A stretch of DNA of 64,000 nucleotides, taken from assembly GCA_003427395.1 (NCBI GenBank), contig BFEA01000028.1:2395112-2459111 (forward strand), given 5' to 3'. This DNA is from Chara braunii. Its lineage: Eukaryota; Plantae; Charophyceae. Below the pieces are notes generated by a model, which was given only the letters and a program-made list of their open reading frames with translations, searched no databases and was not told where the DNA came from. The translations under genes and the position numbers were made by a program. Position 1 is the stretch's first letter; every line of letters begins with the position of its first letter. Below, piece by piece: positions 8,719 through 55,240 of this stretch.

Positions 8719-10410
8719 TCACTCTTGGGGATCCACCACTAGTTGTTGTTTGCCCGTACTCGAGCAAAAAGGGAGGCCCACCTCCTCACTCGCGACAGTC
8801 TCAATCCCCAAATGGTCAATGCTGCATCTACGGGGCAGAGCTTCCTCCCAGGATCCTGCCAGCGGACAGCCTAACCCATCCCAACCCGACCTTACGACCC
8901 TCACCACCCATTTGGAGGTCGCATGTTTTTCCTCTGGCAATGCCCCTTCCACCTTGTACACCGTTCATGGGCAAGGGTCCCTTTTTAACTTCACCCAATC
9001 TCCTTCCTGGAAACCTCCCTTCTTCAATAGGCCCAGCCATTGCACCGGGATGACCTCCTACAATTCTCTCAACCGTTGAAGTCTACTGAACTTTAAGGGC
9101 AAGCACCTTATCATCTTTCCATCATTCCTTCAGTCCCCCTTTGGGTGTCCCATAAATGACCAACCTTGTATATCGCTCGCTCTGCCCATTGATGGTCAAA
9201 CGCACCCACTCTACTTTGTCAGGAAAGGGGTCCCCTGCACTATTACATTTCAACCTATTATCGAAGATGGGTTGATTAAAAACAACACCCATGGACTCTA
9301 GCCACATGCACTAGAGTAATATATTGTCTTTCCATAACACCAACGTAGCGGACCAAGCAGAGGTTCTCCTCATATGGCCCATCATAGCCGCACTGGCGGA
9401 ACACACAAGTCTACCACCACTAGGGAGGTCCTTCAATTTTTTGTATGGACCAAGCAATTGAGTCACCTCTGTCCACGACCCCCCCGTTGTTTTCAACAGG
9501 ACCCAGACCAAGTTTCGAAGTTGCAGGGCAGTCATCTGCAGCCTTGGATCCAGGATTCCCAAGCCTCCCACCAATCTAGGCTGGGTCAGCTTGCCCTATG
9601 CCACTCTGCAAGTATTGTCCCGCTTCACTAGACTTCCTACCCATAGGTACACATGTATCACACTCCTTAACAAACCAAATAGTTGCCTACCTAGCATATG
9701 AATCGCCCCGACGTACGACATAGTAGCAAGCACGAAGTTGTTAACAACTCGCGTTTTGCCAAACAGGCCTAAACTGGTGCGCAATCCCCAAGCCCCCAAC
9801 TTTGCAATTGCAGCTTCCATCAGCGAGGTCATCCGAGCTATGCCTCCACGTGGCGGAGTCACCGACACACCAAGAAAACAGAGCCACGGTGGGGATGTCC
9901 CATCCAGCTGGCGGGGGCGGTCCCTGTGGCATCACTGCCTTGGACTTGCCCTTACAAAAAATGGTTAGGTCGTCCTTTAGAATCTCCAATTGTTGCACTC
10001 TAGGGGAGGTGGTTGCTCATGTATATTTCACCCATTTATCTGGTTCAATCCTCAACCCCTGGAGTAGGTTGTATCTCCTCAGGATGCAACACCTCGATAT
10101 ATATGAAGTAAAGGGTGGGGGATAGGGACATCCCTGCATGACTAATCTAATAAACTAACACCCTTAGTTGTCACCCCATTGACCTGCATGGAAGTCTGAG
10201 CACCCATCAGAAGGGTGCACTCCGAGCCCCCAAAAATTTCCCCAATGCCTCTCCGCTTCATGCATTGTAGCATGAACGCCCACCAAACCCGGTCATAAGC
10301 CTTCTCTAGGTCGATAAGGACCAACGCGAGCAGTTGCTCCCCTTCATTGGCAATTTCCAGCACCTGGCGGATGAGGAAGACATTAGTTAGTATCTGTTTG
10401 GTTGGGACGG
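8719..10410 (-). pseudogene. L1/Tx1-clade LINE ORF2, 3' part (RT domain and C-terminal region), decayed
   Basis: Frameshifted fragments VPTKQILTNVFLIRQ...LIDLEKAYDRV, MQGCPLSP, LKDDLTIF, LGLFGKTRVVNNFVLATMSY and GGLGILD, typical of L1-type reverse transcriptases. Confidence 0.9.
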
Positions 10411-11096
10411 TGTCAAACACATTAGTCCGCCACCGCACAAGCGGGGCGGGACCCTCCCGGCCGCGTCACGCAGGAGTTGGTCTTATCCTCATCGCAAAAT
10501 ACACATGGAGCTTTCGCAAGCCGCTCCGGCCGAGTGCGCCAGCCATACCCCTGGCGAACCCCTACGACAAGATAGGGCCTATGCAAGGCACGACTTACCT
10601 CCACCTTACGGGAGTTGTCACCTCCCTTTGGTGGGCGTATCCCCGCCGAGCTACCAGTCCACAATACGAAAGCTAATCAGTTGCAATCGCAGAGGTGGAC
10701 CAGCCGAGGGCNNNNNNNNNNNNNNNNNNNNNNNNNNNNNNNNNNNNNNNNNNNNNNNNNNNNNNNNNNNNNNNNNNNNNNNNNNNNNNNNNNNNNNNNN
10801 NNNNNNNNNNNNNNNNNNNNNNNNNNNNNNNNNNNNNNNNNNNNNNNNNNNNNNNNNNNNNNNNNNNNNNNNNNNNNNNNNNNNNNNNNNNNNNNNNNNN
10901 NNNNNNNNNNNNNNNNNNNNNNNNNNNNNNNNNNNNNNNNNNNNNNNNNNNNNNNNNNNNNNNNNNNNNNNNNNNNNNNNNNNNNNNNNNNNNNNNNNNN
11001 NNNNNNNNNNNNNNNNNNNNNNNNNNNNNNNNNNNNNNNNNNNNNNNNNNNNNNNNNNNNNNNNNNNNNNNNNNNNNNNNNNNNNNNNNNNNNNNN

Positions 11097-13999: not shown

Positions 14000-15207
14000 C
14001 TTTGCTTAACCCAGTCAGCCACAAGCAAAATTGTCTTCCTCCCAACCTTCCCCAGTTGCATCCCCACAATCTGCTTTCAGTCAGACAAACAAACTGAAAC
14101 TGAAACTTGCACAATCATTCCTTTAATTAAGTCTGGTTTATCCTGAAAGTCAAACTGAAAGTCAAAGTAGGGATGCAGGTAAGATACTCAGTCAACCATA
14201 GCAAGACATACATGTAGGGGTTATAATTGGGCTTATAGAAGAAAAGCAAATGATTGCCTCTCAGTTCTCTGCCTCCAGAACTCCTCCTGAGTTCCGACAG
14301 AGCTCCTGCTCTCAGACTCGCACGAGAGGGCCTTGATTCTTTAACTCGCCCGAGGGTCTCGCAATGGCGGCCAAATATACAGCAACTTAGCCAACCGAAG
14401 TCAAACCGTTGTTCGTTGATTCCCCGACAATTCTTCAGATTCAACAACAATCCTTTCGCAGAAGTCTGACGTCACTTCCAACCCCACGCCGCCGCCACTT
14501 CTTACCAAATCGTTGCTATGTAACCCTAGATGGGTGTATTTTTGTGCTTTTACTCGATATGCAGACAAACCAGTGGGGACTCAGTAAGAAACTGTGCATT
14601 TAACAATCATGCGTAGCAATGACACACCTCAACAATGTATAGCGGAAGCGTAGCTCAATATGTAAAGGAAGTTTAACATGCTTACTAGAGGTTCATCCTC
14701 AGCACGACATCCCAACTGCCCTTGGCAATAGTGCCTGATAACCTTTAGAGAGGACCGTAGGCATAGCGGCATGCAACATGTCACTGTGTCATCTGCAATT
14801 GGTAGGCTATACGTAGTGGTGGCGACTGCCCAGTATCACCGATATACGCCAACAAAGACGAGCAGTGTCACTGCCTGTTATAGTCAACGTTGCGCCTGTT
14901 TATTCTCCTTTAGAGACGACCCTTAGTCCTCCGAGTCATAGCAGATGTGCCCCTCAACCAAGTACCTTAGAGCAGAACACAGCGAACAGACCGTGTGCAC
15001 CTACCCATACTCCTCCTCCGATCGAGCGACTGCCCAAGTCTGCCCTCGGACTGCAAACAACTGCACCCGCTAACTCGTTTGGCTGCAAAACAATCCGCCT
15101 GTTGGCTCGATTGGCTACACTCATACCAGTTCGACAAGGCTCGCTCACTCGTTCTCTCTCTTTCCCCCTCGTACTCAGCGTGCGGCTGCAGCACTGCTTA
15201 CGACCTG

Positions 15208-15699
15208 CACAAGCGGTTATCGGGTAGCTGAAAATTCAGGAATGAAAATTATGAAGTGAGAGTTTTTGGCAGTCTGAAAATCTTGAATGGTCCTGAAGTG
15301 GTGAAAGGTTCGAAGACCCTGAAAACCACCTGTTTAGGCAGGCTGCATCCTGAAGTGGTCAAGGGTGTCTTGAAGTGGTCAAGGGTGTCCTGAAGTGGTC
15401 AAGTGAGAGTTTTGGGCAGTCTGAAAATCCTGAATGGTCTTGAAGTGGTGAAAGGTCCGAAGACCATGAAAACCACCCTTCACTACTTGAGGATGCAACC
15501 TGCCTAAATAGGTGGTTTTCAGGGTCTTCGGACCTTTCACCACTTCAGGACCATTCATGATTTTCAGACATGAATGCTCCTGAAGTGGCGAAAGGTCCGA
15601 AGACCCTGAAAACCACCTGTTTAGGCAGGCTGCATCCTGAAGTGGTGAAGGGTGTCTTGAAGTGGTGATGAAAAATACGACTGTTGTTAACCTTCTCTC
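15208..15699 (+). mobile_element. Family B: TIR-less ~0.48 kb non-autonomous element with 8-bp TSD, nested in A2
   Basis: Ends are CACAAGCGGTTA and TTAACCTTCTCTC. Flanks acgacctg/atgacccg differ only by two CpG transitions. The interior is made of direct and inverted tcctgaagtggtgaa subrepeats. Confidence 0.8.
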
Positions 15700-18083
15700 A
15701 TGACCCGATGCATTCGACTACCATGTTGAGCAACACACCACCTTCATCGCTAGTATGAGCGAAATCTGAATAAATCCTCCACTGAAACGCGGAAGCTCAC
15801 ATCACCTGTTAACAACCCCGCGCACAGATGGATAGAAGAAGGTCACTTCCGTCGTCGAAATGAGCACCGTACCGGCCAATAGGTAAGTCTTTTGTCCCCG
15901 TGGCCGATCTCTCATTTCCTCCACCGAAAACAATCAAGCAAAACCAAATGAACTTATCCCTAGAACTGGGATAGGTGTGTGACCAAATATAATCACGCAG
16001 TACCTATCTTTGACAACATCAAGACTAACGCCCTATCTCTGATTCTAAAACCACCCATTAACCCTTATTCCTCACATCCCTAGTTAGCAAGGTATCTCGC
16101 TTGGCCTTTACCAAGAAACAACCGAGATATGCAGTCCCCGCTCCCTATCTTTGTTCTTCCCCGATACCTTCACGCAGTTCGTTGTTCCTCGTGCACCGAA
16201 ACTAACCTTCCTTTGTCAAAACTGAGTCTACCAATCAACTCGCGGTATCTAAAAAACCCCAAAACGAACTTTCACTCGGCTGCCTTCATGAAGAGACGGG
16301 TAAGTTACTCGAACTTTGTTCCCTCCATATTCGTCTTCACCACTTCTTCTCGCAACTCTTTTCTCCCCTCTCTCTCCCCTTACTAACTTTCTACTAATTC
16401 TACACTTTAAAACAGGGTCGCCACCTCCTAAAATCCCCGACTAGAGCCCTTCCCTACCAGTTCTCACTAAAAAGCGAGTGGGGCACGACAAATCTTCCTC
16501 GCCATAGTCTCCCCTCCTTCGTCACTTGCTCCGCCGGATGCCACCCGCGCGCCTAACGCGATTGCGCGTCCTGATTCGGTCCGCTCTCTCTATTAGCACA
16601 CGCAGCGCGTATAGTCGATTGGCCTGTAGTCGTCCTCATACGGACCGAAACCTTCAGACAGGCGGATTACCATTAAGCGGCTTAGTCGGCTTTCTTCGCT
16701 CCTATACATGAGACCAACGATGGTTGACACGCCAATACCGCTATGGCCCTCGCTCCTATTTCCTACTCGATGAGCGCACCTAGAGTAGCAGTACTATGTG
16801 CCCCCTCCCATACATCACCGCACTTCTCCTGCTTTACATACACCTCGACGTTTTTCCCGTCCAGATCCAACTTTTTACATTACTTCACTACCTCTGCCCG
16901 CCTTAGTCAGCGCCGAAGAGACAACGCTCCAACGTTGAGGCAAGTGGAAGGGTGCGGCCAGCTGCAGATCTTGGAGGTAGTAGCAACATTCAAATGGGAA
17001 CTTTGAAGCCCGACGTGAAAAAGAGTTCCACGTAACCGGTCGGGCACTCAGATTAGCAGCGGGCTTCCTCACTGTGCCCCGACCGCTATTCCCAAGGCCC
17101 AGCTCACCATCTTCCGAGTCCCAACCGGCATGCTTAAATTCAAACCTCTCACAGAAGACTGTGGTTGTCGATTGGTACGCCTGCAACGGGGCCTCGCTAC
17201 TCCGGATTCCTTCGCTTCATGGGCCAGCCGCCCCACTGGCTCACCTGCACGTTGAACTCCTCGGTCCACGTTACGAGCCGGACAAAAATAGAGAAATTCC
17301 TCCAGCATCCCGAACGGGCCCACCAACAGCGGTGCCCGCTCAAGGTCCTCGACTGCCATGGCGGCCACTACATTCGGCGTCGTGTCCAAGCCAAAGGGAC
17401 GCTGGAGCACGAAGATAATAATAATAAGTCAACAAATAATCACCTGCTTAAAAAGATCAGTCGTTCGAGAACGACTTGCGGGGAGAAAGGAACCGTTGGC
17501 ACCGATCCGACTCCGCTGACGACAAAACCAAGGGGGATAGCCCCGCCAGGCCTTCAACCCCTTGGTCCCTTCACGCTACTCTGACATTTCCTACGTCGCC
17601 TCCGCTCGATCTCGATCCTTGAATCTTTTGGTTGGAAATCCCATACTGTAACCAATAGTATTGGCCAAAGGTTGGGTCTAGTACCGATTGACACCTAAAT
17701 AAACAGATGTTGCGCGTCGTGCAGATCTATCGAAATATTTTCAAAATCACATTGTTGTCGATGTAGTCCTCCGCACGTTCGCACAAGTCATAGGCAAGCG
17801 CTCCAAATACAAGACATAATCTTTTTGATCCTAACTTAGTCGGAAAAATAAAAAATTTGGTCGGCGACTAACGCCGGTTTCCACAATTTATCAAAAGAAA
17901 ACAGATCACGCACGCCTTAAGTCTGCGCGCCCACACACTCTCTACTCTAGTCATCCATTTAATCATTGTAAGCCCCAAACACAGTTGCACCTCATGCGGG
18001 ATACTTAAACTTTAAACCAAACCTATTTTTTGTTGCTTGCGAAAACCAGGGCGGATACCCTTGTAAGGGTATTCGTACCGACA

Positions 18084-21000
18084 ATGGCCCCGTCTGTGTG
18101 TGGTAGATAAGTGGCAAAGTGGAGCTGAGGCGATTGGCCAATATCTTCTCCAAGATCTTGTACGTAGAGTTAAGGACCGAGATCGACCATAGTTTCGTAC
18201 ATCGTCCTTCGGGCTCTTCTTGCAAATAAGGACTACATATACATTTGCAAGAACTAGCAGGCATTATGGAAAGTTTCCGCCAGGAACAGGGTGAAGGTGA
18301 TATGGAATTCCTCATAGTAAAAGTCAAGCGAAATCCTTTCTAATCCTGGTGTCTTCAAACGAGGCAGTTCTGCGATCACCTATAGCCGCCGAAACATCTA
18401 CCCACACGTCCTTTTCCAGACTACTCTTCCGGAAACAGATATTTGTAGTACTACTCCATATACCCCAACATACCCGCGATTGTATCCTTTTTACCTCTTG
18501 CTGCGTCGAACTGGTGTTTCCATGGTGGTTATAATAAAAGTTTCCTTATTTTTCTCAGTTTAGCAAAGAATCTCCTTGTTATTTTCTCCTTCACCAACGT
18601 CTAAGCAACTCTCATCCTCCTTCCTCATTTCATTGTTTCCTCCGCGTCGCTTGCCATGCCTTTCACTCCTTGATTGCTTTCACCCTCTCTTCACATCATT
18701 CCTCCTTTGTTTGAACATCCAGCGGGTCCTTATGGAGCTCCCCCAAGTTTTTTATGGAGTCTTGCCCAGATCTTTGATACGACTCGTAAGTCCATTTCAA
18801 TGTTGGTTGCAATGTCTTCTTAACGTTGGCCACCTATACACATAGCCAGTTCAACTTGTTGTAAGTGACTTTACATTTCCATCATTTCCACTATTAAGTC
18901 TTTGTAATCATGCGATCATAATACTCAAGCCGCCATTGAAAAACAAGTTATAACCATAGAGTGGTCTGACGTAGCCGACGGACAAATCTTGACCTCCTTG
19001 CAGCTATTGACAATATCACGGGTAGGCCATATAAAGTCAATCCTGGTTTTTTTCGCTGCATGGGACCCAATGTAGCTATACTTCATATTGTTTGAGTGCA
19101 ATACTCGGTACACATCCTTATATGCCAACTCCGCCATGGCCATTTGAAGTGCAACCGAGTCCAGCTCCATTATCTTAATTCCCCTAACGTTCAATCCGGA
19201 CAAATACCTGTGTGAAATCCTCGATAATTATAAAGTTGTTCACCTCCGGTAGCAGCGTTGCAGGCCTTCCCACATTCTTCTCCGTTCGCTCCCGTCAGTC
19301 AGGACGTAGATCGTTTTGGAACTCAAATCTCCTAATCCCATTTCAACAAAACCCATGCTCACTTTCACCTTGAGTCATAGAACCAATCAGTCACCTACCT
19401 CGAAAGTGGGGGGGGACCAGAAGTGCCCCCCCCCCCCTTCATCCCTCGAGTTGTAGCCCACAACTGGTGTCCCTTCCACCATGGTAGGGGAGAGGTGATT
19501 TTGTGTTCCTCCAACTTCGTCTCCTGCACGAACACCACTTCAATCTGTATGTTTTTAACAAAGGATATGAGTTCCTTTCGTCTGGGTTTATCAATTTTAG
19601 CCCCATGCCTTTAATATTCCATGTAAGTAATTTCATATGATTGAGTTTTTTACTCCCACCGATGGTCGAACATACCCACCAAGTTCCCACTACGTTAATC
19701 CCTTTGGACAACCCCTCCCAAATTGCTAATGAAAAAAACAAACACAATTACCCACCAAACCCGTGCTATGCCCAACCTAATCACCTACACATCCTCAAGA
19801 AAAAGAACGACATACATTTTTATGTGTCGAGAAAGGGTGCCCATCCCAGGGCCCCCACGGAAAAATAGTCTCTCGATCTCTCCCTTTTACCTATTGCCTA
19901 TCCTAAAAAAAAATTATCACTCCCGATGTACTCGTGGATAGGGAGCTTCGCATTAATGCTCCTCAAGATCGACATGGTGGAGTCGTGTACTATATGAAAC
20001 TCTCATGGTCGTGCTACCGGTTTTTATCCTTAGAACGTTCACCCATCTAGCTTTGTGTAACCCCAAGCCAGAGAAATCTGACATGCTCGGAGTGATAATC
20101 AAAAGTCGTTGCCCATACGAGTGAATCTTATAAACTTGTATGTTGAAGGAGGGGGAGCCTTGCAACATCGTAATAGCGACTCACCCAGTGACAAACCTGT
20201 TGGACTACCAACCTTTCCTACAGTAGAGCAGTGACCTTTATCACCAACATCGCGTTCCTTCCTTTCACATGGGGGTTCATGTGCCCACCAAAGAATGAAA
20301 GGGTAGGCATAACCGTCACCTGCCACCAAGATATTCGTTAGATTGCTCGGGGCTATCTCCTACCCCACCCTCCCCCCTTCATTTTTCCCTTGCTCTATCC
20401 CATCGTCAGTTGCGCCCATAAAGACACTCCATCCACTATTCAAAATTTTACTCCCCCTACTTGTTTTTTCCTTGTCCAATGCTTCCCGACATATTTCTCC
20501 CACCTCGTCACTCCGCAGTTGATGACCATCTTCCTCGTCCCTACAACCCTTCTCTTCACCCAATCTGCCAAATCCTTTGCTTCCCCACGTTTCTCTCCAA
20601 ACTCGTCACTTCTCAACTAATGGTCATCCTCATCGTCCCTGCAACCCTTCCCTTCACCTAATCTGCTGAGTCCCTCCCCATGGTTGTTGTCCATTGACCT
20701 TCCCCGCTCTCTTCCTCACTCTCAACATCACCTTCTCTACTGTCTTTCCCAACTTCCTCCACGGGGCCACCAACAAACCATTTTGCCTCCCCACCAAAAT
20801 CATTTCCACTATCATTCATCGCCTTCCGATTGGGTTCCCACTGTTGACTTGCACTTTTTTGGCCAGACCCTTTATACCCCCTCTCCCTCCTGAACAATGT
20901 CCTCATAATCCTGTTGCATCGGGGAGTTGACCACGTCACCACTTCCAGTCTCCCCCCTTCTGATTTTGTAAGCTCCTCGCTTTTGTTGCCATATCGCTGC

Positions 21001-21480: not shown

Positions 21481-21529
21481 TGTCACACGTGACACACGAC
21501 CAGATACCCTCTAAGGCACAACCTATTCT

Positions 21530-22004
21530 GAGAGAAGGTTAACAACAATCGTATTTTTCATCACCACTTCAGGACTCCCTTCACCGCTTCAGGATGCAGC
21601 AGCCTGCCTAAATAGGTGGTTTTCAGGGTCTTCGGACCTTTCACTACTTCAGGACCATTCACGTCTGAAAATCCTGAATGGTCCTGAAGTGGTGAAAACT
21701 TCGAAGACCCTGAAAACCACCTGTTTAGGCAGGCTACATCCTAAAGTGGTGAAGGGTGGTTTTCATGGTTTTCGGATCTTTCATCACTTCAGGACCATTT
21801 ATTATTTTCAGACTATCCAAAACTCTCACTTGACCACTTCAGGACACTCTTCACCACTTCAGGATGCAGCCTGCCTAAACAGGTAGTTTTTATGGTCTTC
21901 GGACCTTTCACCACTTCAGGACCATTTAGGATTTTCAGACTGCCAAAAACTTTCAATTCAGAATTTTCATTCCTGAATTTTCAGCTAGCCGATAACCGCT
22001 TGTG
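21530..22004 (-). mobile_element. Family B copy 2
   Basis: Reverse complement of 15208-15699 with the same ends. Perfect 8-bp TSD cctattct (21522-21529, 22005-22012). Confidence 0.85.
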
Positions 22005-22257
22005 CCTATTCTACAACTACACATTTCACCTTCCCCTCCCCCTTTCCATCCATTGTAGGTTCATGACATTTTAACTACCTTCACTTTGGTGGTTATGAAT
22101 TGGCCAATACTAAAAGGTTGATGCAAAATGTTCCACAATTCAATAAAAAACATAATTGTTCATATATTTATGAAACCTGTTAAAATAACTGAGAAGCTGC
22201 ATTTGAAATATATCTATATATCTATATATGTATAATCCAACTAAGTAGATAAATAAC

Positions 22258-22467: not shown

Positions 22468-24353
22468 CTGTTTCCAGAGTTCCTCCTGAACTTCGGCAGA
22501 GCTCCCACAATTGCTCTGTTATCAGCCTATGCAATTAATTGTGTGGACCCAAAGTTCGCAAAAAACAGGATTATCTTACTGGAAGTACGCCATAAGTCAC
22601 TTATAGTCGAAGAGATAGGTGTTTGAGAGGATCAAACAACCATAAGAACGGAGGAGGATGGAGGAGGTAGGCACCATCACAAAGTGATAATGTCTCTCTC
22701 CTTTCGTTATGCCTCGTATTCTCTTCCTCTCCGACCCTTGTTTAATACATGATGTTTAATAATAGCAATAGTAAAACAACAAAATAACCAATAATAATAA
22801 TAATAATAACTGGGTAGAAAGCCGTACGCGTACGAACCCAAAATCGCGTGTACTCGTACAGAAAAAACAAAACACAAATATGAAAAAAACGTATGTTGTG
22901 CAGAACAATGATACAAACAACATTTGTCTGAGAGTCATACCCGAATTCCCAACCAATCTTGATTTAAAAATCAAAAACCTTAAAGAAAACTTTAAAATAA
23001 TAATAATAATAAATTATGTTTAAATAGTTTTTAAATTATTATGATAATATTACCTTTTTTTTAGTTTTTAATTTCTTACTCGAGTTTGATTGGGAATACG
23101 GGGATGACTCCAGGGCAAAAGTTGTTTGTATCATGCATAATATATATTTGTTATAGAAGTTTATTTTTTTTGTGTCTTTGATTTTTCACTCGAGTTTCGT
23201 ACAGAATTTGGCGATGAATCTCAGGCAAAAGTTGTTGCAAATATCATTTTGCATAACATACTTTTGTTTCAGATTTGTCTGACAACGGTTTGTTTTTTTT
23301 TTTTTACGTATTCTCACGTACGGGAGGACATTTACACGCGTACGTGTCGTGTTGTCGGGGCAAATACCCTCACAAGGGTATTTGTCAAGGTTTTTCAATG
23401 TCAGACGCTGTCTGACCTTTTTTCTTTAAATCGAAGGACTTGATGAGACTGGCGTTTGCTAAAAAGCTTATTCAGATCTGACCTATGATTGAGAGACAAA
23501 AAGTTTTCAGACTTTAGTCCGGACGCGTGTGGCGCCCAGGAGTAACGAATGTGAACGGCAATGCTTCGCGTCTGTCAAAGCCGCAGGAATGTGCGGATAA
23601 GGGACTGCTAAAATTAAACCTATCCTACCGCGGCACACTCAGCATGAGCCGCCCGATTGAATGGGCGGCAGTGTGTGTGCTGCAGGACCAGAAGACCGTC
23701 GTACCGACAACGGCGCAGCTAGCATTGAGAAAGGAGGCCGACAAGGCCTGCCTTTGGTCGTGGTTGGGTAGCCTGCTGGGCTGCTACCCTTCATATAGAA
23801 GAGTAACAGGCTTAACTTCTGTGAAAAGGAGCTAGCCTAGTATGTTACCATGTCAAACTCTTACCGTGTTGATACCGGGATCGAATCCAATAGGCCCTAC
23901 TGGGCGCAGCTCCTTTTGGAGTTGCCTTTCTATAGGGCGCGGTCAACCTCGAACGCCCGATCACGAAGATCGCGCGACCAAGATTGGTCGCGCGAGATTA
24001 GCGTGACCCCTGCGCAAGTATGACACGCACAAATCAAGAAAATGGCCCAAGTTTTTTTTCGATTCCCTTCACTCGGGTCTGTATTTCAACAAGTTTACTG
24101 CCGTTGGCATAAGCCAACGGCTTCAATATTACTGCGCCAGATGGCGCAGAGAGATGTGGTTGGGGACTTACAGTCCCCAGAGAAGGCCCGTTGAAAACGG
24201 GCAGCCATTTTCTTTTAAGTTTTCTTTTTGTTTTTCTTTTCAGTTATTTAGATTTTTTCTTTAGATTTTCTTGTTATATTTTGTTAGATTTTTTCCTTTT
24301 TTTTTTTTTTTTTTTTTTTGAATGCCCGTTCATTTCAAACGAACGGGTGACTA

Positions 24354-24406
24354 GACTGTTTCGTCGGGGTTGCGCCAACTCATCAGGAGGTTGGACCTCG
24401 ACAGTC
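24354..24406 (-). ncRNA. Type III hammerhead ribozyme (copy 1)
   Basis: Minus strand GACUGU-C^GAGG-UCCAA-CCUC-CUGAUGA-GUUGG-CGCAACC-CCGAC-GAA-ACAGUC. Complete core with GUC cleavage triplet, and stems I, II and III all pair. Confidence 0.92.
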
Positions 24407-24635
24407 CAATCGTTGCGCGTGAACCTTACGCTGAAGGCAACCAGGTGCAGAGAAAGAGAGAAGGGGAAAGAAAGGGGGGGAGCCACCAAACTTACCTATG
24501 GTTGGCCCCTCCGTGCAGCTTTCAACAATAGGATAAGCAAAATCGAATGAATCTCCCACCAGAAAGTGGGAGAATACATCCTCGCGTGCAGTGGCGAAGC
24601 CACTGCTACAGCTGCGACCAAGGAGGGTTGTGCCA

Positions 24636-24688
24636 GACTGTTTCGTCGGACTCTCACCGACTCATCAGGAGGTTGGACCTCGACAGTC
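24636..24688 (-). ncRNA. Type III hammerhead ribozyme (copy 2)
   Basis: Minus strand GACUGU-C^GAGG-UCCAA-CCUC-CUGAUGA-GUCGG-UGAGAGU-CCGAC-GAA-ACAGUC. Differs from copy 1 only in stem II and loop II, with pairing preserved. Confidence 0.93.
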
Positions 24689-25087
24689 AGCCCCTGCGCC
24701 TGAACCCGGCGCCGATAGCGTCTAGGTTCAGGCATATATAGAGAGAGAGAGAGGGGGAGAGAGGGAGAGGGAGAGAGAGCGAGAGGGAGAGAAAAAGAGA
24801 GAGGAAGGGTACCTACCCTACCTACCTACCTACCTATCTGGTTGACCCCGTGGTACTTCCAACGATGGGATGACCAAAATCGAAGGAATCTACCCCAAGG
24901 ACAAGGGGAGATTCACGCTACAGATAGAAAAGGTAAGTTGTTGTTTTTTTTGCTTTCTTCTTTTGTTTTTGTTTGTTTCTTTTTCTTCGTTTTTTTAGCT
25001 CGCCCACGTCACGTGGCCGTTGGCGTATAGAAAGCAGGGGAAAACGGGGAAGGATGAAACGAAATAAACAAAGAAACTGTAAAAAAA

Positions 25088-25118
<31 letters not shown>

Positions 25119-26244
25119 GAGGCAGCTGCCTCGTGGAAACAAAAACGAAAAAAAACAGCCTTTTCGGCTGTGTGGGAGCAGAAAGGCTCCCCACCCCATT
25201 CAGGGCGAATATTTGAGGCCGCGAGATTTTAAATCTTGCGGCTCACGATGCGCGCATGAGAATGGGATTGTGAAGTTGGTTGAAGAGAGGAAGGGAGGAG
25301 GGACGTGAGAAATGGGAGAGGGAGGTCCTACTCCTCCCAGCCTGCCAACTGCCCTCCCCGTTTTTAGGGGAGGGTAGCAAAAAGTTAGGGAGGACTGTAG
25401 CATGCAACTGCATGAACCTGTCTGAGAGAATGGCCAGGCGCATGCAGTTAGAATAGTTTTTTTTTTTTTTTTTTTCTTCTTTATTTTTTTGAGGACACTT
25501 GTCCTCACGTGGTGCTACCTCTGGCAGAAACTGCCAGAGGTAACTGTCAGGCTCCCGTTTTTGAAGGGAGCTTGAAAATTGAAGGGCCACTAAGGAAAAG
25601 GCTAGGTGCAGCCTATTCCCTGATGTATCTGCCCTGGGAAAAGGGTCCAGATACATCAAATTGTAAGGGGTTGTATCTCTCCAACCCTTTATCAGAAAAA
25701 TAAAGGAAAAACAGATTTAGAAATGGTAGAAGCCCAGCTATCTCGTGAGATTCCGAGATAGCTGGGAAAAAGAAAAGAAAAATAAAATAAGGGCAATTAA
25801 AGAAACTGCCCCACACTAAGGCTGTGGCTGTGGTGCGACCACAGTCAGCCCTGGATCTTGGCAGATCAAGGGCTCACAGTGAGCCCGCGATTTTGCCTCG
25901 GGGCTGGAGTGACGTCCAGCCCTCCTCAGCCAATATAAAACAGGCAGTTGCCCCCCAGCTGCCACACAATGCAATCGTGATGCCAGTGTGTGACGAGCAC
26001 ACTTGAGTATTGCTGGTTGCTGGAGCTGCTGCCTGAGGCAACGTGAGGAGAGGCTGGAGGTCTGCAGAGGAGCGCAAGGAGAAGAACTGGGCAGCCATAG
26101 CTAAGGCAGGGGGCACTCTGCTCCCCTCCCCTCTGGCTGGTGTTGGTCCCACGGGACAGACCCAGTGGCGCTGTGGGACTACGGCAGTACGGCACAGTGA
26201 AATTTAGGCCTGGGGCCCAAATTTTACTAATTTTGGCCTGCTAT

Positions 26245-26610
26245 TTTTTTTCGGCAGCGGTACGGAGGTGTTGTCGAAATTCTGCGGCGGCGGCACGGGT
26301 TTTTACAACAGCGATATGGAGGTGCTGCCAAAATTTTGCGGCGGTAGTTCTGGTTTTCTCGGCGGTGATGCGGAAGCGCTGCCCGGATTTTGCGGCGGCG
26401 GTTCTGGTTTTCTCGACGGTGGTGCGGAAGCTCTGCCGGATTTTTGCGGCGGCGGTTCTCGTTTTCTCGGCGGTGATGCGAAACCACTGCCGGATTTTTG
26501 CGGCGGAGGTTCTGGATTTTTTCGGCGGTGGTACGGAAGCGCTGTCGGATTTTTGCGGCGGCAACTCCGGTTTTAACGGCGGCAGTGCGAAAGCGCTGCC
26601 GGATTTTGTT
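26245..26610. repeat. 54-bp GC-rich minisatellite (~6.5 copies) inside A3
   Basis: Unit ggttttctcggcggtgatgcggaagcgctgccggatttttgcggcggcggttct. Produces 18-aa periodic ORFs in several frames. Confidence 0.85.
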
Positions 26611-27917
26611 TGCAGCGTCAGTATCGGATTCTTGCAGCGACGACACTATTTTCACGACAGTAACGACAATATTTTTGCACTAAGTGGAGGTGGGACATTG
26701 ACACAGAGGAGGTGCGTCTAAGCGGTGTTTTATTTTGAAGTGGCGTGAGGGTGACGCCGCTGAGACGCCGTGCTTTAAAACCAAGTGGCGGTAACAAGAA
26801 AACGCCACCAGGTTTTTGGGAGGCGATCGGTGCTGAGAAGGTACTCTGGCAAGCGATCGTCAAAGGAAGTGGTGTCGATCACTTTGGTGGCGACTGGGTG
26901 CGACAACCTTCTCGTCGGGAGAGCGTACTTCTATACGGTTTTCTTGGGTATACCGTTCAACTTCACTCAAGGTCAGTTAACCTGATTCAGTTCCCTTCAC
27001 ACCTGTGTGAACCCGCACTTGCTTGACCTTAACTCTCTTAACGTTCATTGAAAAGGAAAAGGAAATGTGTGTTAGCGTGTGTTATGAGGAGTCTGGCGAT
27101 GGCAAAGGAATGTATGGTGGTATGTGTGATCTGGCTTTGATTGCAGGTACAACATGTGGGCTGAGATGGATGAGGGTGATGATGGTGGAAGAATGGTTAT
27201 TTTCTCACCTTTTTACTTATGACTGCGTGTAAACTAAAGGGAAAAGAAGACGACGAAAATGAAGCGGGCACAAAGAAGAGAAGCGCAATTTAACTTAGAC
27301 TTTTTCCCGAGGTCACCAATTATTTCGCGAATGACCCTTTCTATCTACGCTTGTCCATCTGAATGATCCTTTCTTTACAATTATCTTTTTCCTTCGTCTA
27401 AGTTGCTCCTAACGTCAGGCGGCAAGAGTTTCTTTGCCCATCGTGTAGATATTTTTCCTTTTCCTATGAGGCATCTGGGGCGGGGGTTCGTTGCCTTAGG
27501 GGCCGGCCCTGTTATCGACTCAGAGTGGACCGCTTTGCGGGGGGGTACCATGCTGTTGCGGTGGAGTCAGCCCGACTTCTGAGTTCCGACGTTCACTCGG
27601 ACGAGGACGAGGGGTATCCCAGACCACCTCCTAGGGGGATGGATAAAAGCATCTTCACGAAAGGACTTTAAGTTCTTGATGCCTTGCGTAAGGAGAAACT
27701 GCCATAGCACTCATTTTGTGGCCGTTCTAATGAGCCACTGACGTATGGGGAATTGGTGCCACAAGCAGCTCATTTCGTATCCTACTATCCAAACGGAGTG
27801 TATTTAGATATTCTCGACGTGGCTGGCCGTGCCATAAGAAGCACGGGCCAGAAGGAAGGTAAATGTTTTAGTAATACTTAGTTGTAACTTGATCACTTTT
27901 GTCTTCACTTCGTTCAG

Positions 27918-32808: not shown

Positions 32809-33075
32809 CACAAGCGGTTAACGGGTAGCTGGAAATTTAGGAATTAAAATTTTGAAGTGAGAGTTTTGGGCATTCTAAAAATCCTGAATGGTCAAAAAGT
32901 GGTGAAAGGTCCGAAGACCCTGAGGCAGATAGCATCCTGAAGTGGTGAGTATGTCCTGAAGTGGTGAAAGGTTCGAAGACCCTGAAAACCACCTGTTTAG
33001 GTAGGCTGCATCCTGAAGTGGTGAAGGGTGTCCTGAAGTGGTGATGAAAAATACGACTGTTGTTAACATTCTCTC
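32809..33075 (+). mobile_element. Family B copy 3 (internally deleted, no TSD)
   Basis: Same CACAAGCGGTTA and TTAACATTCTCTC ends and the same subrepeats. Confidence 0.8.
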
Positions 33076-34648: not shown

Positions 34649-36334
34649 GATACTTCCTTCTCTGCTAGACCTTTTCTGTTTGCCCGACGTCCGATTGTTC
34701 TGCCTCCTTCCATCCGATGTTCCCCCTTTTGCTCCTCGTATGCCAGAGGTGTAGAAATTTTTTATTCTAGTTAATTATTTCACTAGGGCGAAAGGGAGTC
34801 TTATGTACTCTCTCTCTCTCTTGTACCTTCCCCTCTTTCTTGCGTTACCCCTCGCCCTTGTCCTATGTCGTCATCTTGTTGCCATCCTCATAAGTTCGGT
34901 TGTCCTTCATAGTGATGATTGACGCCTCTTATGCCGGTCAGATCTAGTGACAATTGTCCTCCTAAGTATGGATGGTTGTACCCTCCGAAGAGTCCTCCGC
35001 TTGGTACACCTTGCAGGTCTGTATAGGCTCTTGGTGGGAGACCATAACCACTCGGTGGGATAGTTTGACCGTATTGGCCTTATGCCGCCCACGACATAAA
35101 TGACGAGGGGTCATTTGTCATCCCGAATCCAAAGCCCATCTGCTCCGTCCCTGGAACTTTCTGTCATAGAATCACGCTTGGAGGATAAATATGATTAGTA
35201 CGGCTATGTGCCATTCCACTTGGTGGTTGACTAGTCGGATCTCTTTATTCCCCTCCCGATCGACTTGGCTTTGGCCCCAAAGGACACTGGTACCCCTGAT
35301 GAGTGACCGACTCTGTTTGTTGAAAGCCTTGCAAGCGTTCTTGTGAAACTCCATTCTGCTGTTGTTGTAGGTTTTTGCGGTATTGATCCTCCATATGGAA
35401 GAAGGCTTTACATCTTATGCAGCTTGGAGTCCCTGATGAAGTGAGGTTCACAATCAAAGTATCTCCTTCGAAGGTCATAACGAAGATTTTGTCCTTCATG
35501 TTCACTCAAGATGCCGGTTCCACATTGAACTTGAGATTAAGTAGCGACGGTTTTAATCGATCTGGCTCTGGTGGATAGTAGGACTGGACCTATCGCTTTA
35601 TGGATTTGAGCCTCCAGGTAAAACATAGCGTAAAGAGGCACTTGCTGCCACAACCCAAAAGGTGGAGTCCTCTTCTCTTCTCCCCTGCTCTTGTAGTTGA
35701 GCCCTCGTCAACCATGATTTAAACTCCAATACATACCGCGTGCTTCGAAGGGTAATCGCGTCTTGTCCTTTGTTCTTTAGCCATGTAGCGACTATTGCAC
35801 TTTTCCCGATGTAGGAAACCACATTTGGACTCTCGATTTTCACTCTCCTTCGTTTGAATACGATTGCATTGAAGCTGTCATCCTGCAGCCGTTCGTCCTC
35901 ATACGCTCTTACCACGTCGTCCTTCATTTTTTTGGGCAAAAAATGAGCGGCTTCCCTGAAGATTACTGTGACCGTATGTTCTTTGATCCAATCCACTTTG
36001 GTTTTGTCAATCCTTTCGTTGACTTTAAACGTCACTTCCCTCTCGTTCACTGTCATTTCTCGTGGATCCACCGACGCTGACATAATCCCTTCATCATAGC
36101 ATAATCGAGCAAACTCCCTTATTCTATTGTCATCTTCATCCAGTGGTTGCTCCGGAGCCGCTGAAGGGGAACGCCCTCCCTCGACCATAGGGGCTTCCAT
36201 ATCATTTTTTTTCCCCTCGTCCTATTGTTACTTCCTCCTCTGTTGACTATGGTGACATTAACCCTAATTACGCTCCAGAAACATGTGTGTGTGACCATAT
36301 GTTTCCTGATCACGCCATTTTCTTGGTGTAGCAC
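34649..36334 (-). pseudogene. LINE ORF1-like remnant with a zinc knuckle
   Basis: A 200-aa fragment 35598-36200 (EHTVTVIF...LEFKSWL...FWVVA) followed by frameshifted TPSCIRCKAFFHMEDQY, a degenerate CX2CX4HX4C. This layout is typical of plant L1 ORF1. ORF2 is absent. The element may extend to ~37700. Confidence 0.65.
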
Positions 36335-39197
36335 TCCTTGAGCTTCTCCTTGTTATATCTTCACCCTGTTAACCTCCTTTTCTCCTTTGGGGTCCGACTA
36401 CGGGTGCTCGCAACTCTGTCCTCCATAGCTAAAGCTATGACCTCCGTCAAAGCGGATGGCATCGAACGTAGTTCCCACTGCAGTCCCATCGCGCTGGTAG
36501 GACTTTCGGCCGAAAACGCCTCCCGTGCCCGCGCTTGGTCCGAGCGCTTGAAAATCAGCGCTGCCGGACCGCGCCGGTCGGGCCCGTCTATTCCTCCCGT
36601 TTTGGACCCTATTTCGAGCAAAGTGACGCTCCCCGCAAATAGATGGAGCCTTCCCAGCAGGGTCCCACCAAAAGAGGCTGCTCTTACTTTTTTTCTTTTT
36701 AGAAGAAAAGGGATCCATTCATTGCAAGAGAAAAATAAGGGGGCCGGGAAACCCTCCACAACACAACCCAAAGAAAATCTGGGACTATTACCCAGTTCCG
36801 GGTCTATGTCCAGAAGCAGGAGTGGCCAACACCAGACCCCTGCTCTGACATTCCGCGCCCCTGGTAAAAAAAAACGGTACAAGAGGCTGCTCTTAGTGTG
36901 GCCCCTGCCTTGAAGTTCACCAAAAAAGAAGGAAAAAAAAAGAATGAAAGCCCTTAGGGCTGCGTTCCAGTGCCACCTGTGCTGGGTGCCACCGCTCTTT
37001 TTCAGAGGAGGCCGGCAGACCCGTACCACCCCAGCCTGGGGCCTTCGTGCCCAGTGGCAGCAGTCTACTGGTAGGCCTTTCCGTGGCTGATTCCCCCAAC
37101 CCCAGTCCTGTGGGTTTTCTTGATTCCCCCATGCCCTCCTAGCCCCCCGGTCTTCCCNCCCAGTGGCAGCAGTCTACTGGTAGGCCTTTCCGTGGCTGAT
37201 TCCCCCAACCCCAGTCCTGTGGGTTTTCTTGATTCCCCCATGCCCTCGTAGCCCCCCGGTCTTCCCATCAGGCGTCCGCGTGAAAGAGAGTTTCTTGGTC
37301 CTACTGTTTTCAACAGTGCATTCAAAGGCTTTGGAAAGGTGGTATGGACGTCCAGTGACACCGAGCCAACGTCAGTTACCGAGGCAAGGGAAGGCGACTC
37401 AGGGATGGGGCAATTGGGAAGGCTCCCGTTCAAATTGGCGCTGTTACTTCGGCACCGATTTCGTCGGGGTTGAATCTGACACGTGAGATGAAATCTGTGC
37501 GATCCCGTGAAAGGTGCTCGCCGTGTCTGTCTGTCGGGAGGTACCGTTCCACAACGCTACTGTAGAAAATGTCAGGCTCTAGCTTAGAGGTAGCAGCTTT
37601 TGGCCTCGTCATAGGTGAGCCTCGTTTTTAGGCTAGGGTGTAGCCCGGGGCGTAGCTTCGCATGCATGAGTGGATTGCTTTCGCTTCTCGGCTTAGCTTT
37701 GGATACGTTGTGCGGATTTGGTTTTGTCTATTCCTAGAGGCGGCGTTGTTCTTACGGCAGAAGGCGAGTGCTTTCAGTATACCGGCAACCACGGACGTAT
37801 GCGGCTCGATTCCCTTGGGAATTCCCTCGTTCTCTCCCCGCCACCACAACCCACTGTGGCTTTGTTACGCCCACACAGGCAGCGATAGCAAGCGAGTGAG
37901 CGAGCGGTGAGCGGACGAAAGACCAAGAGCGCGAGCGAGAGCGGGGCGAGCAAAGAAGGTTGACATGACACGACGGAGGAGGACATACGTATACAAGTGG
38001 TGGACGTATATTCTTTGGCTTTGTCCATAACATAACGCACGATCCAACCGTCCCGCGAACGCGGGTTTGCCTCAAATCGAACGGCTGGCCATAGCTCAGC
38101 TATCACCCGCCACCACTTACTGGCATGGACAGTAGCAGTGCGGCTGTGTACCTACGGCACGCAGCCCAGGAAAAGAATACTACACGGGCAGGCACAAAGG
38201 GCAAAAGATTCGGGTACTAGAAGCACAAAGGATGTGTGTCGGATCTGTAGCAGAACTGATGATGAGCAGGAAGCGATCAAGTTGCCTGCGGATCAAGGTG
38301 AGTGCGACAAGCACAGAGCAAGTAACGTAGGGCACCCAAGTCAGGAAAGGAGGGAGGGGGAGGGGGAGGGGGAGGGGGAGAGATGACTTAGAGGAGACGC
38401 TACGGTAGTGAAGTGTTGAGGGAAATCCCGGCCAGGGTAAGGCTTCAGTTCGGTCCCAACCGGAGAGGCTTGGGATGTGGAAGAGGGGGGGAGAGCAGGG
38501 TCGAGGGAGATCCGTGTCCTCTGCCTCCCAGCTGAATTTGGGGTGAGTGGGGGCATTCTTGCGACTCCGCGGGAAAAGGGCCTCGGGATGAGAGGATACG
38601 CGGGCGAAGCTGGGGGTGGTTGAACGGGGACGTGCGTCAGCAGGGGCCAGGTGTGGCCACGTGTCAGCTGGGGAAACGATGATGACGTTGATGATGATCG
38701 TGATGATGGAATCGGAACCGCCCGTTCCACGTGGATCGCCGCCTCCCCCGTGAGGCGAAGGAGTAGGTTCTCTGTCTCTCTGTGTCTTTCTTCCCATCCC
38801 ATCAACCTTTTCTGTCTCTATACTCCCATCCCATCCTGTCTCTGTAATTAATGCATCATCTGCAAATCATCTCGGCAGTGCGCGGCCACAGCGCTTTTGG
38901 TGGACGGTCGATTGGCTAAAGGTGTGATTGATTGTTTTGCCTGCGCGTGCGGGAGAATAATCCTCCCTCCTCTCTGACTTCCTTCTCTTGGCCTCCTCTT
39001 GCTCATCCTCCTGAGGTGTCCTCTTGTCTTCCCTCCGTGCTCACCCTCTGCTCTCCCTTTGATTGGTTTGAGGTAATCAAGGGGAGGAAGAGAGGCACAC
39101 CTCGGCTACGGCATCAATCGCCACGTCCTCGGTGGGGATCGTCCATCTGGCGGTCCCCCTTCCGGCGGTGAATGCGCGCCGGTCGGATTACCCCGCG

Positions 39198-51257: not shown

Positions 51258-51277
51258 GACTCTCTCTCTCTCTCTCT

Positions 51278-55240
<3,963 letters not shown>

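Follow-up and report, generated by a model that had tools for sequence, protein, structure and literature searches.

Tandem hammerhead ribozymes on the minus strand of a Chara braunii contig raise the question of whether this charophyte alga carries a locus that makes small circular RNAs, and of what kind of element the ribozymes belong to. Genome-encoded tandem hammerheads are a known route to ribozyme-made circRNAs. The picture so far is split: in flowering plants the hammerheads are type III and belong to LTR retrozymes, and in animals they are type I and belong to non-LTR, Penelope-linked repeats. At the locus described here, type III hammerheads are arranged in tandem, in association with microsatellites and without LTRs. 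We analyzed it within a 64-kb window (the whole stretch of DNA under study) and compared it with 130 kb of other C. braunii loci, or ~195 kb together with the window.

The two ribozymes, HH1 and HH2 (Table 1), were detected with the Rfam Hammerhead_3 model (RF00008) and were also recovered by a separate motif scan. HH1 scores 50.6 bits (E = 3.5e-8) in a scan of the whole window, which is above the gathering score of 48.5 bits, whereas HH2, scored in a scan of 6 kb, falls short of it at 41.7 bits (E = 1e-6) and is not listed by a permissive RF00008 scan over the whole window. The lower score of HH2 is attributable to its loop II and to a G-U pair in stem II. Both RNAs carry the core CUGAUGA...GAAA and a GUC cleavage triplet, and both have an open helix III of 6 bp, a helix I of 5 bp closed by a 3-nt loop, and a helix II of 5 bp closed by a 7-nt loop. 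The canonical fold lies within 0.5 kcal/mol of the minimum free energy in each case (-18.3 versus -18.7 kcal/mol for HH1, and -15.3 versus -15.8 kcal/mol for HH2). Hammerhead_3 is the best and sole Rfam family that matches them and the open helix is III, so they are not type I ribozymes. We reject a chance match, as the two Rfam matches are in phase and their helices I and III are identical. These Rfam matches, with complete cores and helices, agree with the original prediction of two intact minus-strand hammerheads, and place the predicted cuts after C24682 (HH1) and after C24400 (HH2). Rfam scans found no hammerheads in the 64-kb window besides these two, and no ribozyme on the plus strand at the locus.

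Both ribozymes are intact and constrained relative to their flanks. HH1 and HH2 are identical at 48 of 55 positions (46 of 48 when loop II is left out), while the flanking sequences are only about 60-62% identical, and it is this disparity that indicates constraint. A blastn alignment of 24353-24482 with 24635-24761 has 74.6% identity. Among the seven differences, five are in loop II, one converts a G-C pair of stem II to G-U, and the last affects the unpaired base that lies 5' of helix III. Outside the ribozyme the units are ~38% diverged and their microsatellites differ in length, indicating that the locus is old.

Retention of a ribozyme within a decaying context might also be expected if the host had domesticated these hammerheads, with selection keeping them to process a host transcript, for example in 3'-end formation or noncoding RNA regulation. 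Isolated type III hammerheads that are transcribed and active are present in Arabidopsis (reviewed in PMC7761336). However, no credible gene was found near the hammerheads on either strand in this repeat-rich, gap-rich region, and selection on the master copies of a family, combined with separate insertions, explains the conservation with no need for a host function. Domestication thus seems extremely improbable.

Double cleavage is predicted from the sequence to release a 282-nt RNA, a length that was proposed originally and that agrees with the two cleavage sites. If the minus strand is transcribed and cut by both ribozymes, the 282-nt circRNA could be a transposition intermediate, or even a replication intermediate, of a living retrozyme family. 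The intactness of both ribozymes and their strong conservation relative to the flanks are consistent with such activity, and circRNAs are known to be produced from tandem hammerheads in both plants (PMC4918200) and animals (PMC7229834). Moreover, because the 6-bp helix III is stable, each hammerhead is predicted to be capable of acting as a monomer. The divergence of the units and their unequal microsatellites nonetheless point to an old locus, and the only complete monomer at the locus is a microsatellite-containing mosaic. The predicted fold of this monomer (-96.8 kcal/mol) is marginal when compared with shuffled sequence (z-score of only -1.9), in contrast to retrozymes, for which compact rod-like or branched structures have been described. 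A 92-amino acid stop-to-stop ORF spans the monomer (24386-24661, minus strand), and a translated search across it returned no candidates. Finally, this was the only locus with intact ribozymes seen in ~195 kb, so any family of intact tandem units is hypothetical. We consider it quite unlikely that the locus is an active retrozyme, and this diverged copy is probably no longer active.

The anatomy of the array is modular and bounded by microsatellites. Read along the minus strand, it consists of body module a, a (CT)n tract, a unit comprising a pre-hammerhead segment, HH1, a tail and body module b, a CT-rich junction, and then a unit comprising a pre-hammerhead segment, HH2 and a short tail, after which come a hairpin and an A-tract. 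Alignments and blastn resolve two hammerhead units of ~282 bp and a truncated third unit. The 282-nt "unit" is itself a mosaic that combines a hammerhead module with a body module of ~100 nt and a (CT)n microsatellite. At least eight further copies of the body module, all with a constant 5' edge, are present in the window with no hammerhead attached. Repeats of (CT)n, (CA)n or C-rich type border these free copies, which are sometimes accompanied by inverted partial copies. In the plus-strand cluster each copy has (CT)n on one side and a C-rich or (CA)n repeat on the other, and the minus-strand cluster includes adjacent inverted partial copies and microsatellites and borders an assembly gap (54652-54962). 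Upstream of module a, positions 24926-25000 are an A-rich tract and not a ribozyme. At the other end, A-rich sequence continues beyond the A23 tract to about 24205.

Table 1. Features of the tandem hammerhead locus and of related modules in the window
Feature	Position	Strand	Evidence
HH1, type III hammerhead	24635-24689	minus	RF00008, motif scan, fold
HH2, type III hammerhead	24353-24407	minus	RF00008 (below gathering score), core and three helices intact, fold
Predicted 282-nt RNA between the two cuts, circularizable monomer	24400-24681	minus	Cleavage-site coordinates
Pre-hammerhead segment of upstream unit, with GGGTTCAGG motif	24690-24737	minus	Aligns with pre-HH2 segment and with L003 and L005 copies
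Pre-hammerhead segment of downstream unit	24408-24449	minus	Alignments; ~60% identical to upstream partner
Post-hammerhead tail, then body module b with GATTCATTCGATTTTGC core	24488-24634	minus	Alignment with unit 1 and with copies lacking a hammerhead (51.3-51.9 and 54.3-55.2 kb)
Body module a, no hammerhead upstream	24815-24925	minus	Alignment; same 5' boundary as free-standing copies
(CT)n and (GGTA)n microsatellites, junction of module a and HH1 unit	24740-24836	minus	TRF rows 24740-24803 and 24810-24836
Degenerate C/T-rich microsatellite junction before HH2 unit	24450-24487	minus	Sequence reading, alignment
23-nt hairpin (24347-24325), then A23 (24319-24297), end of array	24297-24347	minus	Sequence; TRF homopolymer 24289-24319
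Four hammerhead-less body-module copies (51275-51332, 51535-51593, 51730-51789, 51824-51878)	51275-51878	plus	blastn, sequence
At least four hammerhead-less body-module copies (54285-54344, 54487-54546, 54978-55142, 55164-55233)	54285-55233	minus	blastn
Composite ~2-kb block holding the hammerhead pair, absent from paralogue 7468-8344	24039-26089		blastn alignments

The pair could have arisen with no RNA intermediate, through unequal crossing-over of a single hammerhead insert as in a satellite. Its units are head to tail, and slippage and unequal exchange occur readily at microsatellite junctions such as theirs. Duplication in situ followed by neutral decay should, however, erode the ribozymes as much as their flanks, which has not happened, and upstream module a lacks a hammerhead part. 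Satellite-type expansion is therefore very unlikely to account for the pair. Newt satellite 2, Schistosoma Sm-alpha and cave-cricket pDo500 are short tandem repeats that each contain a self-cleaving hammerhead, but these ribozymes are type I and reside in long homogeneous arrays, unlike the two diverged units of mosaic modules observed here. Carnation small viroid-like RNA (CarSV), a circular RNA with hammerheads and a plant DNA counterpart, is close in size (275 nt) to the predicted 282-nt RNA. CarSV, however, is linked to a pararetrovirus and has hammerheads in both polarities, whereas the plus strand of the C. braunii locus has no ribozyme.

Plant LTR retrozymes (Cervera et al. 2016, PMC4918200) share with this locus a type III hammerhead, membership in the green lineage, and two direct-repeat ribozymes that delimit a circularizable noncoding RNA, which is predicted here from sequence. 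In other respects they are distinct. Plant LTR retrozymes have LTRs of 300-400 bp, a tRNA-Met primer-binding site (PBS), a polypurine tract (PPT) and 4-bp target-site duplications (TSDs) (PMC4918200), none of which was found here. Their ribozymes are separated by 400-1000 bp, and they are mobilized by Ty3-gypsy elements (PMC4918200), whereas the ribozymes of C. braunii are 282 nt apart. Also, the LTRs of plant retrozymes flank an internal region of 300-600 bp, whereas the units here abut, with no internal region. Using a PBS motif taken from general knowledge, we found no tRNA-Met PBS near the locus at two or fewer mismatches; two matches elsewhere in the window (22.5 and 48.8 kb) are fewer than expected by chance. 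The hammerhead strand has no polypurine tract, and carries a (CT)n polypyrimidine tract instead. No TSD is recognizable around the array, because both flanks are A-rich low-complexity sequence. We therefore reject a plant LTR retrozyme, as was anticipated from the apparent lack of LTR, PBS and PPT.

Non-LTR retrozymes of metazoans (Cervera & de la Pena 2020, PMC7229834; PMC7761336) also resemble the locus. They too are tandem hammerhead repeats of 150-400 bp that lack an LTR, PBS and PPT and have a GC content below 50%, and they likewise have predicted small circRNAs and a proposed Penelope-like link. Tandem-hammerhead retrozymes of animals have been argued to be non-autonomous derivatives of Penelope-like elements (PLEs) (preprint 10.64898/2026.07.22.740005). 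Unlike this locus, which has a type III ribozyme with a 6-bp helix III and only ~2 units in a streptophyte alga, the metazoan retrozymes occur in animals and have ribozymes of type I, whose helix III is often weak so that cleavage takes place as a dimer.

Hammerheads in C. braunii retroelements are already known. Chlamys-type PLEs of this species bear hammerheads at their 3' ends, and canonical hammerheads have been reported for Chlamys-2 and for a third Chlamys/PLE-X type (Craig et al. 2021, PMC8557442). Copies of these elements are frequently 5'-truncated, form partial tandems and have inverted copies next to them, and they insert into microsatellites, the reported targets being (CA)n and (C)n (PMC8557442). 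The topology of the Chara hammerheads, type I or type III, is not given in that study (PMC8557442). The classical PLE hammerhead is a minimal type I, unlike the type III ribozymes of this locus.

On balance, we consider it somewhat probable that the locus is an old partial-tandem insert of a hammerhead-bearing non-LTR retroelement of Chara, corresponding either to the 3' portion of a Chlamys-type PLE or to a short non-autonomous PLE derivative (a "non-LTR retrozyme" with a type III hammerhead), of which the derivative is more likely. The mosaic unit, with its ~38% divergence outside the ribozyme, argues for such an insert and against a fresh multimer of one circle. In the life cycle of the proposed family, the ribozyme would cut multimeric or tandem transcripts in cis to produce unit-length RNAs, and cDNA would then be reinserted into simple-sequence DNA, generating 5'-truncated, tandem and inverted copies. 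The Penelope-like partner of the locus is inferred, as are its transcription, self-cleavage and circularization.

Truncated relatives elsewhere in C. braunii are in keeping with an insert of this kind. Homologous copies of the hammerhead and tail are present in three other C. braunii loci (L003, L005 and L007), where they are variably truncated inside the ribozyme, lie next to inverted partial copies and terminate in (TA)n. These tails are 5'-truncated, arranged in tandem and inverted orientation, and embedded in (TA)n. Two Penelope-like features can thus be recognized. Copies that are 5'-truncated, tandem or inverted and partial occur among the hammerhead tails of L005 and L007 and the body modules at 54.3-55.2 kb, and the sequences bordering the copies are microsatellites of (CT)n, (CA)n, C-rich or (TA)n type. 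Chlamys-2_cBra and PLE-X-like elements (PMC8557442) match the C. braunii copies in genome or genus, in having a canonical hammerhead near a retroelement 3' end, and in that copies are truncated at the 5' end, occur as partial tandems with inverted copies alongside, and sit in microsatellites. When compared by published description, they differ in that our copies have no linked RT, GIY-YIG or gag-like ORF, and in that our units are only ~250-290 bp. We considered and rejected the idea that the L005 copy begins precisely at the ribozyme cut site; the initial 8 nt of this copy are identical to the pre-hammerhead GGGTTCAGG motif, so an internal deletion is the simpler reading.

No Penelope-like RT or GIY-YIG ORF was found beside any hammerhead copy in the window or in the 130 kb of C. 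braunii loci, and therefore the Penelope-like link is drawn entirely from anatomy and the literature. Among 22 ORFs from the window and L005, the only Pfam matches were to fragments of RVT_1, to a hAT transposase and, weakly, to FAM193_C. The RTs that were found are of LINE or Ty3 type, and include a Ty3-type RT in L006 and APE/RT-like ORFs typical of LINEs. An ApbE match was also observed in L005.

Two features count against a Penelope-like reading. The body module is absent 3' of HH2, which is odd for a 3'-anchored element, and the A23 tract at the array end also fits LINE-type retroposition. Specifically, a tandem-hammerhead RNA might have been reverse-transcribed by an L1-like LINE via its poly(A) and inserted into an A-rich target, creating a SINE-like or processed retrocopy. 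The A23 tract directly follows the array, C. braunii has abundant L1-like LINEs (with ORF1, APE endonuclease and RT), which also occur in the window, and elements with A-rich tails are stacked within the same ~2-kb block. Conversely, no TSD can be recognized in the A-rich low-complexity flanks, the internal junctions are (CT)n microsatellites and not poly(A), and neither module matches the C. braunii LINE loci that were compared. Furthermore, the free body-module copies and the C. braunii hammerhead tails terminate in repeats of (CT)n, (CA)n or (TA)n and have inverted partial copies next to them, which is not an L1 signature. LINE-mediated retroposition is accordingly a quite doubtful origin for the array.

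If the preferred reading of an old Chlamys-type or PLE-derived insert is extended to a family that is still living, Chara would have a non-LTR type III retrozyme family that is mobilized by Chlamys-type PLEs and makes ~280-nt circRNAs. We view this as rather unlikely. If true, the family would stand, in a streptophyte alga, midway between the ribozymes associated with PLEs and the type III hammerheads found in viroid-like RNAs and in the LTR retrozymes of angiosperms, and plant hammerhead circles would have originated before land plants. An active family would thereby bridge the plant and animal groups, and bear on the source of type III hammerheads in retrozymes and viroid-like RNAs. At present there is a single decayed copy, in a genome for which retroelement hammerheads have already been reported, and the locus is a useful pointer rather than a discovery. 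The locus had been put forward as an unusual new circle-maker; that view holds as a sequence-level prediction, but the PLE hammerheads of C. braunii were described previously, the unit is a diverged mosaic, and the proposed genomic context was not reproduced.

With regard to this context, the hammerheads had been assigned to a 6.9-kb "family A" element, antisense to a cargo ORF. With blastn, no repeat copy of such size containing the locus could be delimited. The nearby plus-strand ORFs (24191-24550 and 26140-26721) translate low-complexity or tandem-repeat sequence, and the second of them has no Pfam match. The only detectable paralogy around the locus is that of 23360-24038 and 26090-26183 to 8344-7468, which is inverted and 61-68% identical. 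Because only these two flanks align, the ~2 kb between them are absent from the paralogue, and this hammerhead-containing block is, as judged from the alignments, an insertion. Exact-pattern scans with a motif combining helix I and the core found 0 matches in IMG/VR, and two JGI metagenome matches (TARA contigs L001 and L002) are attributable to chance, as they are not hammerheads according to Rfam. Elsewhere in the window, whose sequence comparisons point to C. braunii or a close relative, an ORF at 35601-36221 (minus strand) matches only Chara braunii proteins, at 54-62%, and repeats that the window has in common with C. braunii scaffolds are 85-88% identical.

HH1 and HH2, the two hammerhead ribozymes on the minus strand (see table), both match the Hammerhead_3 family of Rfam. 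HH1 is the single match when the whole window is searched with Rfam at the gathering threshold (50.6 bits, E 3.5e-8; gathering score for Hammerhead_3, 48.5 bits). HH2 is found in a permissive Rfam scan of 22-28 kb (41.7 bits, E 1e-6); its score is under the curated cut-off, and it is missing from the permissive whole-window list. Our own motif scan of the whole window retrieved both ribozymes and no further hammerhead, and no plus-strand ribozyme was detected in the permissive Rfam scans of 22-28 kb and of the whole window. By direct reading, each has a CUGAUGA and GAAA core with a GUC triplet, an open helix III of 6 bp, a helix I of 5 bp with a CCA loop, and a helix II of 5 bp with a 7-nt loop. 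The canonical structure lies 0.4-0.5 kcal/mol from the minimum free energy (MFE) structure in each case, and is therefore thermodynamically accessible. Cleavage is predicted after C24682 (HH1) and C24400 (HH2), which would yield a 282-nt RNA. Rfam, the motif scan and direct reading thus agree with the original prediction of two minus-strand hammerheads, and the same cut positions and product length were obtained from the sequence.

From shortly before to just past the HH2 cut site (24399-24413, minus strand), pairing is possible between UUGGAC, directly 5' of HH2, and GUCCAA of helix I and loop I. This alternative hairpin spans the cleavage site, is present in the MFE structure of HH2, and has no counterpart in HH1. 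It could be a cleavage/ligation switch, or possibly a mere weakening of HH2.

The two units headed by these ribozymes can be aligned (74.6% identity over 130 nt including the ribozyme, blastn). HH1 and HH2 are identical at 48 of 55 positions; of the seven differences, five fall in loop II and one at the unpaired base 5' of helix III, while the last, C to U in stem II, leaves a G-U pair. Outside loop II, 46 of 48 positions are identical, whereas the 60 nt upstream and the unit body are 60-62% identical between units, which bears out the earlier claim of far stronger conservation in the ribozyme than elsewhere in the unit. With flanks at ~62%, such identity is far beyond the neutral expectation, and means that the ribozyme has been under selection, perhaps at this locus but more plausibly in the master copies that gave rise to both units. 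The unequal decay of ribozyme and flanks also argues against mere duplication in situ followed by drift. Satellite-type duplication in place fits the data more poorly and appears improbable, and domestication of the hammerheads by the host, likewise a poorer fit, is more improbable still.

The order of parts along the minus strand (see table) establishes that the 282-nt unit is a mosaic of hammerhead module, body module (a repeat piece of ~100 nt) and microsatellite junction. Free-standing body modules occur elsewhere in the window, with a constant 5' edge, and no hammerhead lies beside either group of these copies. No target site duplication could be called around the array, both flanks of which are A-rich simple sequence.

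Coordinates of the array and of other features in the window
Feature	Position	Strand	Remarks
A-rich tract	about 25000-24940	-	array start, direct reading
Body module a	24925-24815	-	no ribozyme upstream
(GGTA)n and (CT)n microsatellites	24836-24740	-	after body module a
Pre-hammerhead segment with GGGTTCAGG motif	between microsatellites and HH1	-	
HH1, then tail of ~35 nt	24689-24635 (HH1)	-	after GGGTTCAGG segment
Body module b	up to about 24488	-	after HH1 tail
C/T-rich junction, then second pre-hammerhead segment	between body module b and HH2	-	
HH2, then short tail with 23-nt hairpin	24407-24353 (HH2)	-	before A23
A23 and further A-rich sequence	array end	-	
Free body modules, 4 copies	51275-51878	+	(CT)n on one side, C-rich or (CA)n on other
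Free body modules, at least 4	54285-55233	-	inverted partial copies, microsatellites; assembly gap adjoins
Reverse-transcriptase fragments	10145-10465, 17995-18339, 38183-38866	-	
Inverted repeats, ~480 bp	15207-15700 / 21529-22005		87.5% identical, enclose 6.8 kb
Third partial copy of inverted repeat	32809-33075		32.8-33.1 kb
AT-rich palindrome, ~440 bp	22840-23278		MITE-like

In a sensitive self-comparison, segments 23360-24038 and 26090-26183 have an inverted paralogue at 8344-7468 (61-68% identity), and the ~2 kb between them (24039-26089), with both hammerheads, are missing from this paralogue. This arrangement suggests that the hammerhead block, which has numerous small hairpins and several A-rich tails, is a composite that was inserted secondarily. 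Its absence from the paralogue agrees with the original remark that hammerheads are missing from the other copies, but a 6.9-kb family A element around the pair could not be reproduced in this comparison, nor could its proposed cargo ORF. Nearby plus-strand ORFs are translations of low-complexity or tandem-repeat sequence. ORF 24191-24550 translates poly-T or low-complexity sequence; the 193-aa ORF 26140-26721 stems from a 54/108-nt tandem repeat (26255-26607, plus strand, 3-5 copies, 78-83% matches) and, lacking a Pfam match, is not a credible cargo gene.

The ~480-bp inverted repeats, each with internal palindromic sub-repeats, may be what was originally taken for element ends. Segments resembling the 3' half of U6 snRNA (23994-24055, plus strand, and 7529-7589, minus strand; 39.3 and 26 bits, neither of which reaches the gathering score) sit in a repeated element with two inverted paralogous copies, and one directly borders the hammerhead block. 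A full-length U6 (71 bits) is present in another C. braunii locus (L004, 2349-2456).

Relatives of the ribozyme regions were sought by blastn in ~130 kb of C. braunii sequence, from loci reached via protein look-ups. Homologous copies are found in loci L003, L005 and L007, and no hammerhead in the 130 kb is intact. The L003 copy retains the GGGTTCAGG motif but has a mutated and shortened core. In L005, GGGTTCAG directly abuts the 3' strand of helix I and the cleavage site is gone, and the L007 copies start 5' at differing points within helix II. The L005 and L007 copies share 95-97% identity and a tail of ~85 nt with (TA)n at its end; the homologous L003 tail is more diverged and is followed by a different short tandem repeat. 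An inverted partial copy lies alongside several of these relatives. The pattern is the one expected if these are 3' ends left by a microsatellite-targeting retroelement that was active recently and inserted in the manner of Penelope-like elements (PLEs). Tails of the abundant L005/L007 subfamily are unlike the body module of the window, so there are at least two hammerhead-bearing subfamilies.

The L005/L007 repeat is abundant and recently amplified (L005 8980-9290; L007 6860-7130, 8890-8955 and 19330-19555). It consists of the 3' part of the hammerhead plus the ~85-nt tail, always within (TA)n and with inverted partial copies. Only the L005 copy extends far enough 5', and there the cleavage-site half of the ribozyme is absent.

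C. braunii has three types of Chlamys-clade PLEs, in families that are highly abundant throughout the genome (Craig, Yushenova, Rodriguez and Arkhipova 2021, PMC8557442). Chlamys-2_cBra has a canonical 3' hammerhead and a gag-like upstream ORF, and the third type, which is EN-less and also occurs in Selaginella, has canonical hammerheads; the topology of the Chara hammerheads is not given there (PMC8557442). PLE insertions are generally 5'-truncated, form partial tandems (pLTRs) and often carry an inverted truncated copy 5', and many Chlamys elements insert into microsatellites, for example (CA)n and (C)n (PMC8557442). These insertion hallmarks are common to PLEs and the Chara copies. We infer that the family represents either the 3' region of a PLE or a short non-autonomous element derived from one; animal retrozymes are argued to be non-autonomous PLE derivatives in a 2026 preprint (10.64898/2026.07.22.740005).

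Retroposition by LINEs could also be considered. ORF 35601-36221 (minus strand) belongs to a multi-copy family, with six protein matches, all from C. braunii (54-62% identity). Homologues in L004, L006, L007 and L008 (around 10-16 kb) are closely followed by ORFs whose motifs resemble those of APE endonuclease and RT (recognized by eye, not scanned against Pfam), and the family therefore looks like ORF1 of an L1-like LINE. The abundance of L1-like LINEs and the A23 tail favour LINE-mediated retroposition, but microsatellite junctions and inverted partial copies are left unexplained, and we consider it unlikely.

Under the PLE-related reading, a host RNA ligase may close the released RNA unit, and a retroelement reverse transcriptase would copy it back into simple-sequence DNA. 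In this predicted working the locus is retrozyme-like. In plant LTR retrozymes the ribozymes lie 400-1000 bp apart, and the elements have LTRs of 300-400 bp, a tRNA-Met PBS, a PPT and 4-bp TSDs (PMC4918200); the Chara locus has no PBS, PPT, or LTR with internal region and differs in size, and was not assigned to this class. Its architecture matches that of animal non-LTR retrozymes, which are tandem units of 150-300 bp without LTR, PBS or PPT (PMC7761336). However, their hammerhead is of type I, typical of animals, whereas that of Chara is of type III, found mostly in plants and their infectious circRNAs (PMC7761336). Earlier work already describes hammerheads in retroelements of C. braunii, and the circRNA concept is an established one; what is new here is that a charophyte, a streptophyte alga, has a type III hammerhead arranged in tandem in a PLE-like, non-LTR setting. 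It is also conceivable, with a rather small probability, that a type III non-LTR retrozyme family still lives in charophytes and links the animal systems with the plant ones.

Several features suggest that this locus is a relic: its units are 38% diverged, its monomer gives a weak fold signal (-96.8 kcal/mol, z -1.9), and a single complete monomer is present. An active retrozyme locus producing a 282-nt circle is possible but unsupported, and we regard it as doubtful.

The window as a whole looks eukaryotic, with assembly gaps, dense microsatellites and snRNA-like fragments, and no long real ORFs. Other repeats common to the window and the C. braunii scaffolds L003-L008 (GCA_003427395.1) are 85-88% identical, and together with the protein matches of ORF 35601-36221 they place the window in C. 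braunii or a very close relative. Its longest ORF (39473-41830, plus strand, 785 aa) is of low complexity (poly-G, poly-S, poly-T), crosses an N gap, has no Pfam match and is probably not a gene. The three reverse-transcriptase fragments look LINE-like and not Penelope-like. RVT_1 is matched by two of them, at 27.6 and a very weak 13.1 bits, each short of the 29.6-bit Pfam cut-off, and the ORF of the third has a FADD motif at its start. Matches to plant miRNA precursors (MIR7533, MIR841) at the AT-rich palindrome are all far below gathering scores and were dismissed as spurious. Tandem units of ~200-290 bp at 53400-54100 (minus strand) each comprise a fragment similar to the 5' portion of U2 snRNA (33 bits at 53846-53961, 29 bits at 53565-53665), then an A-rich stretch and (GA)n, and this array looks like snRNA-derived retrocopies.
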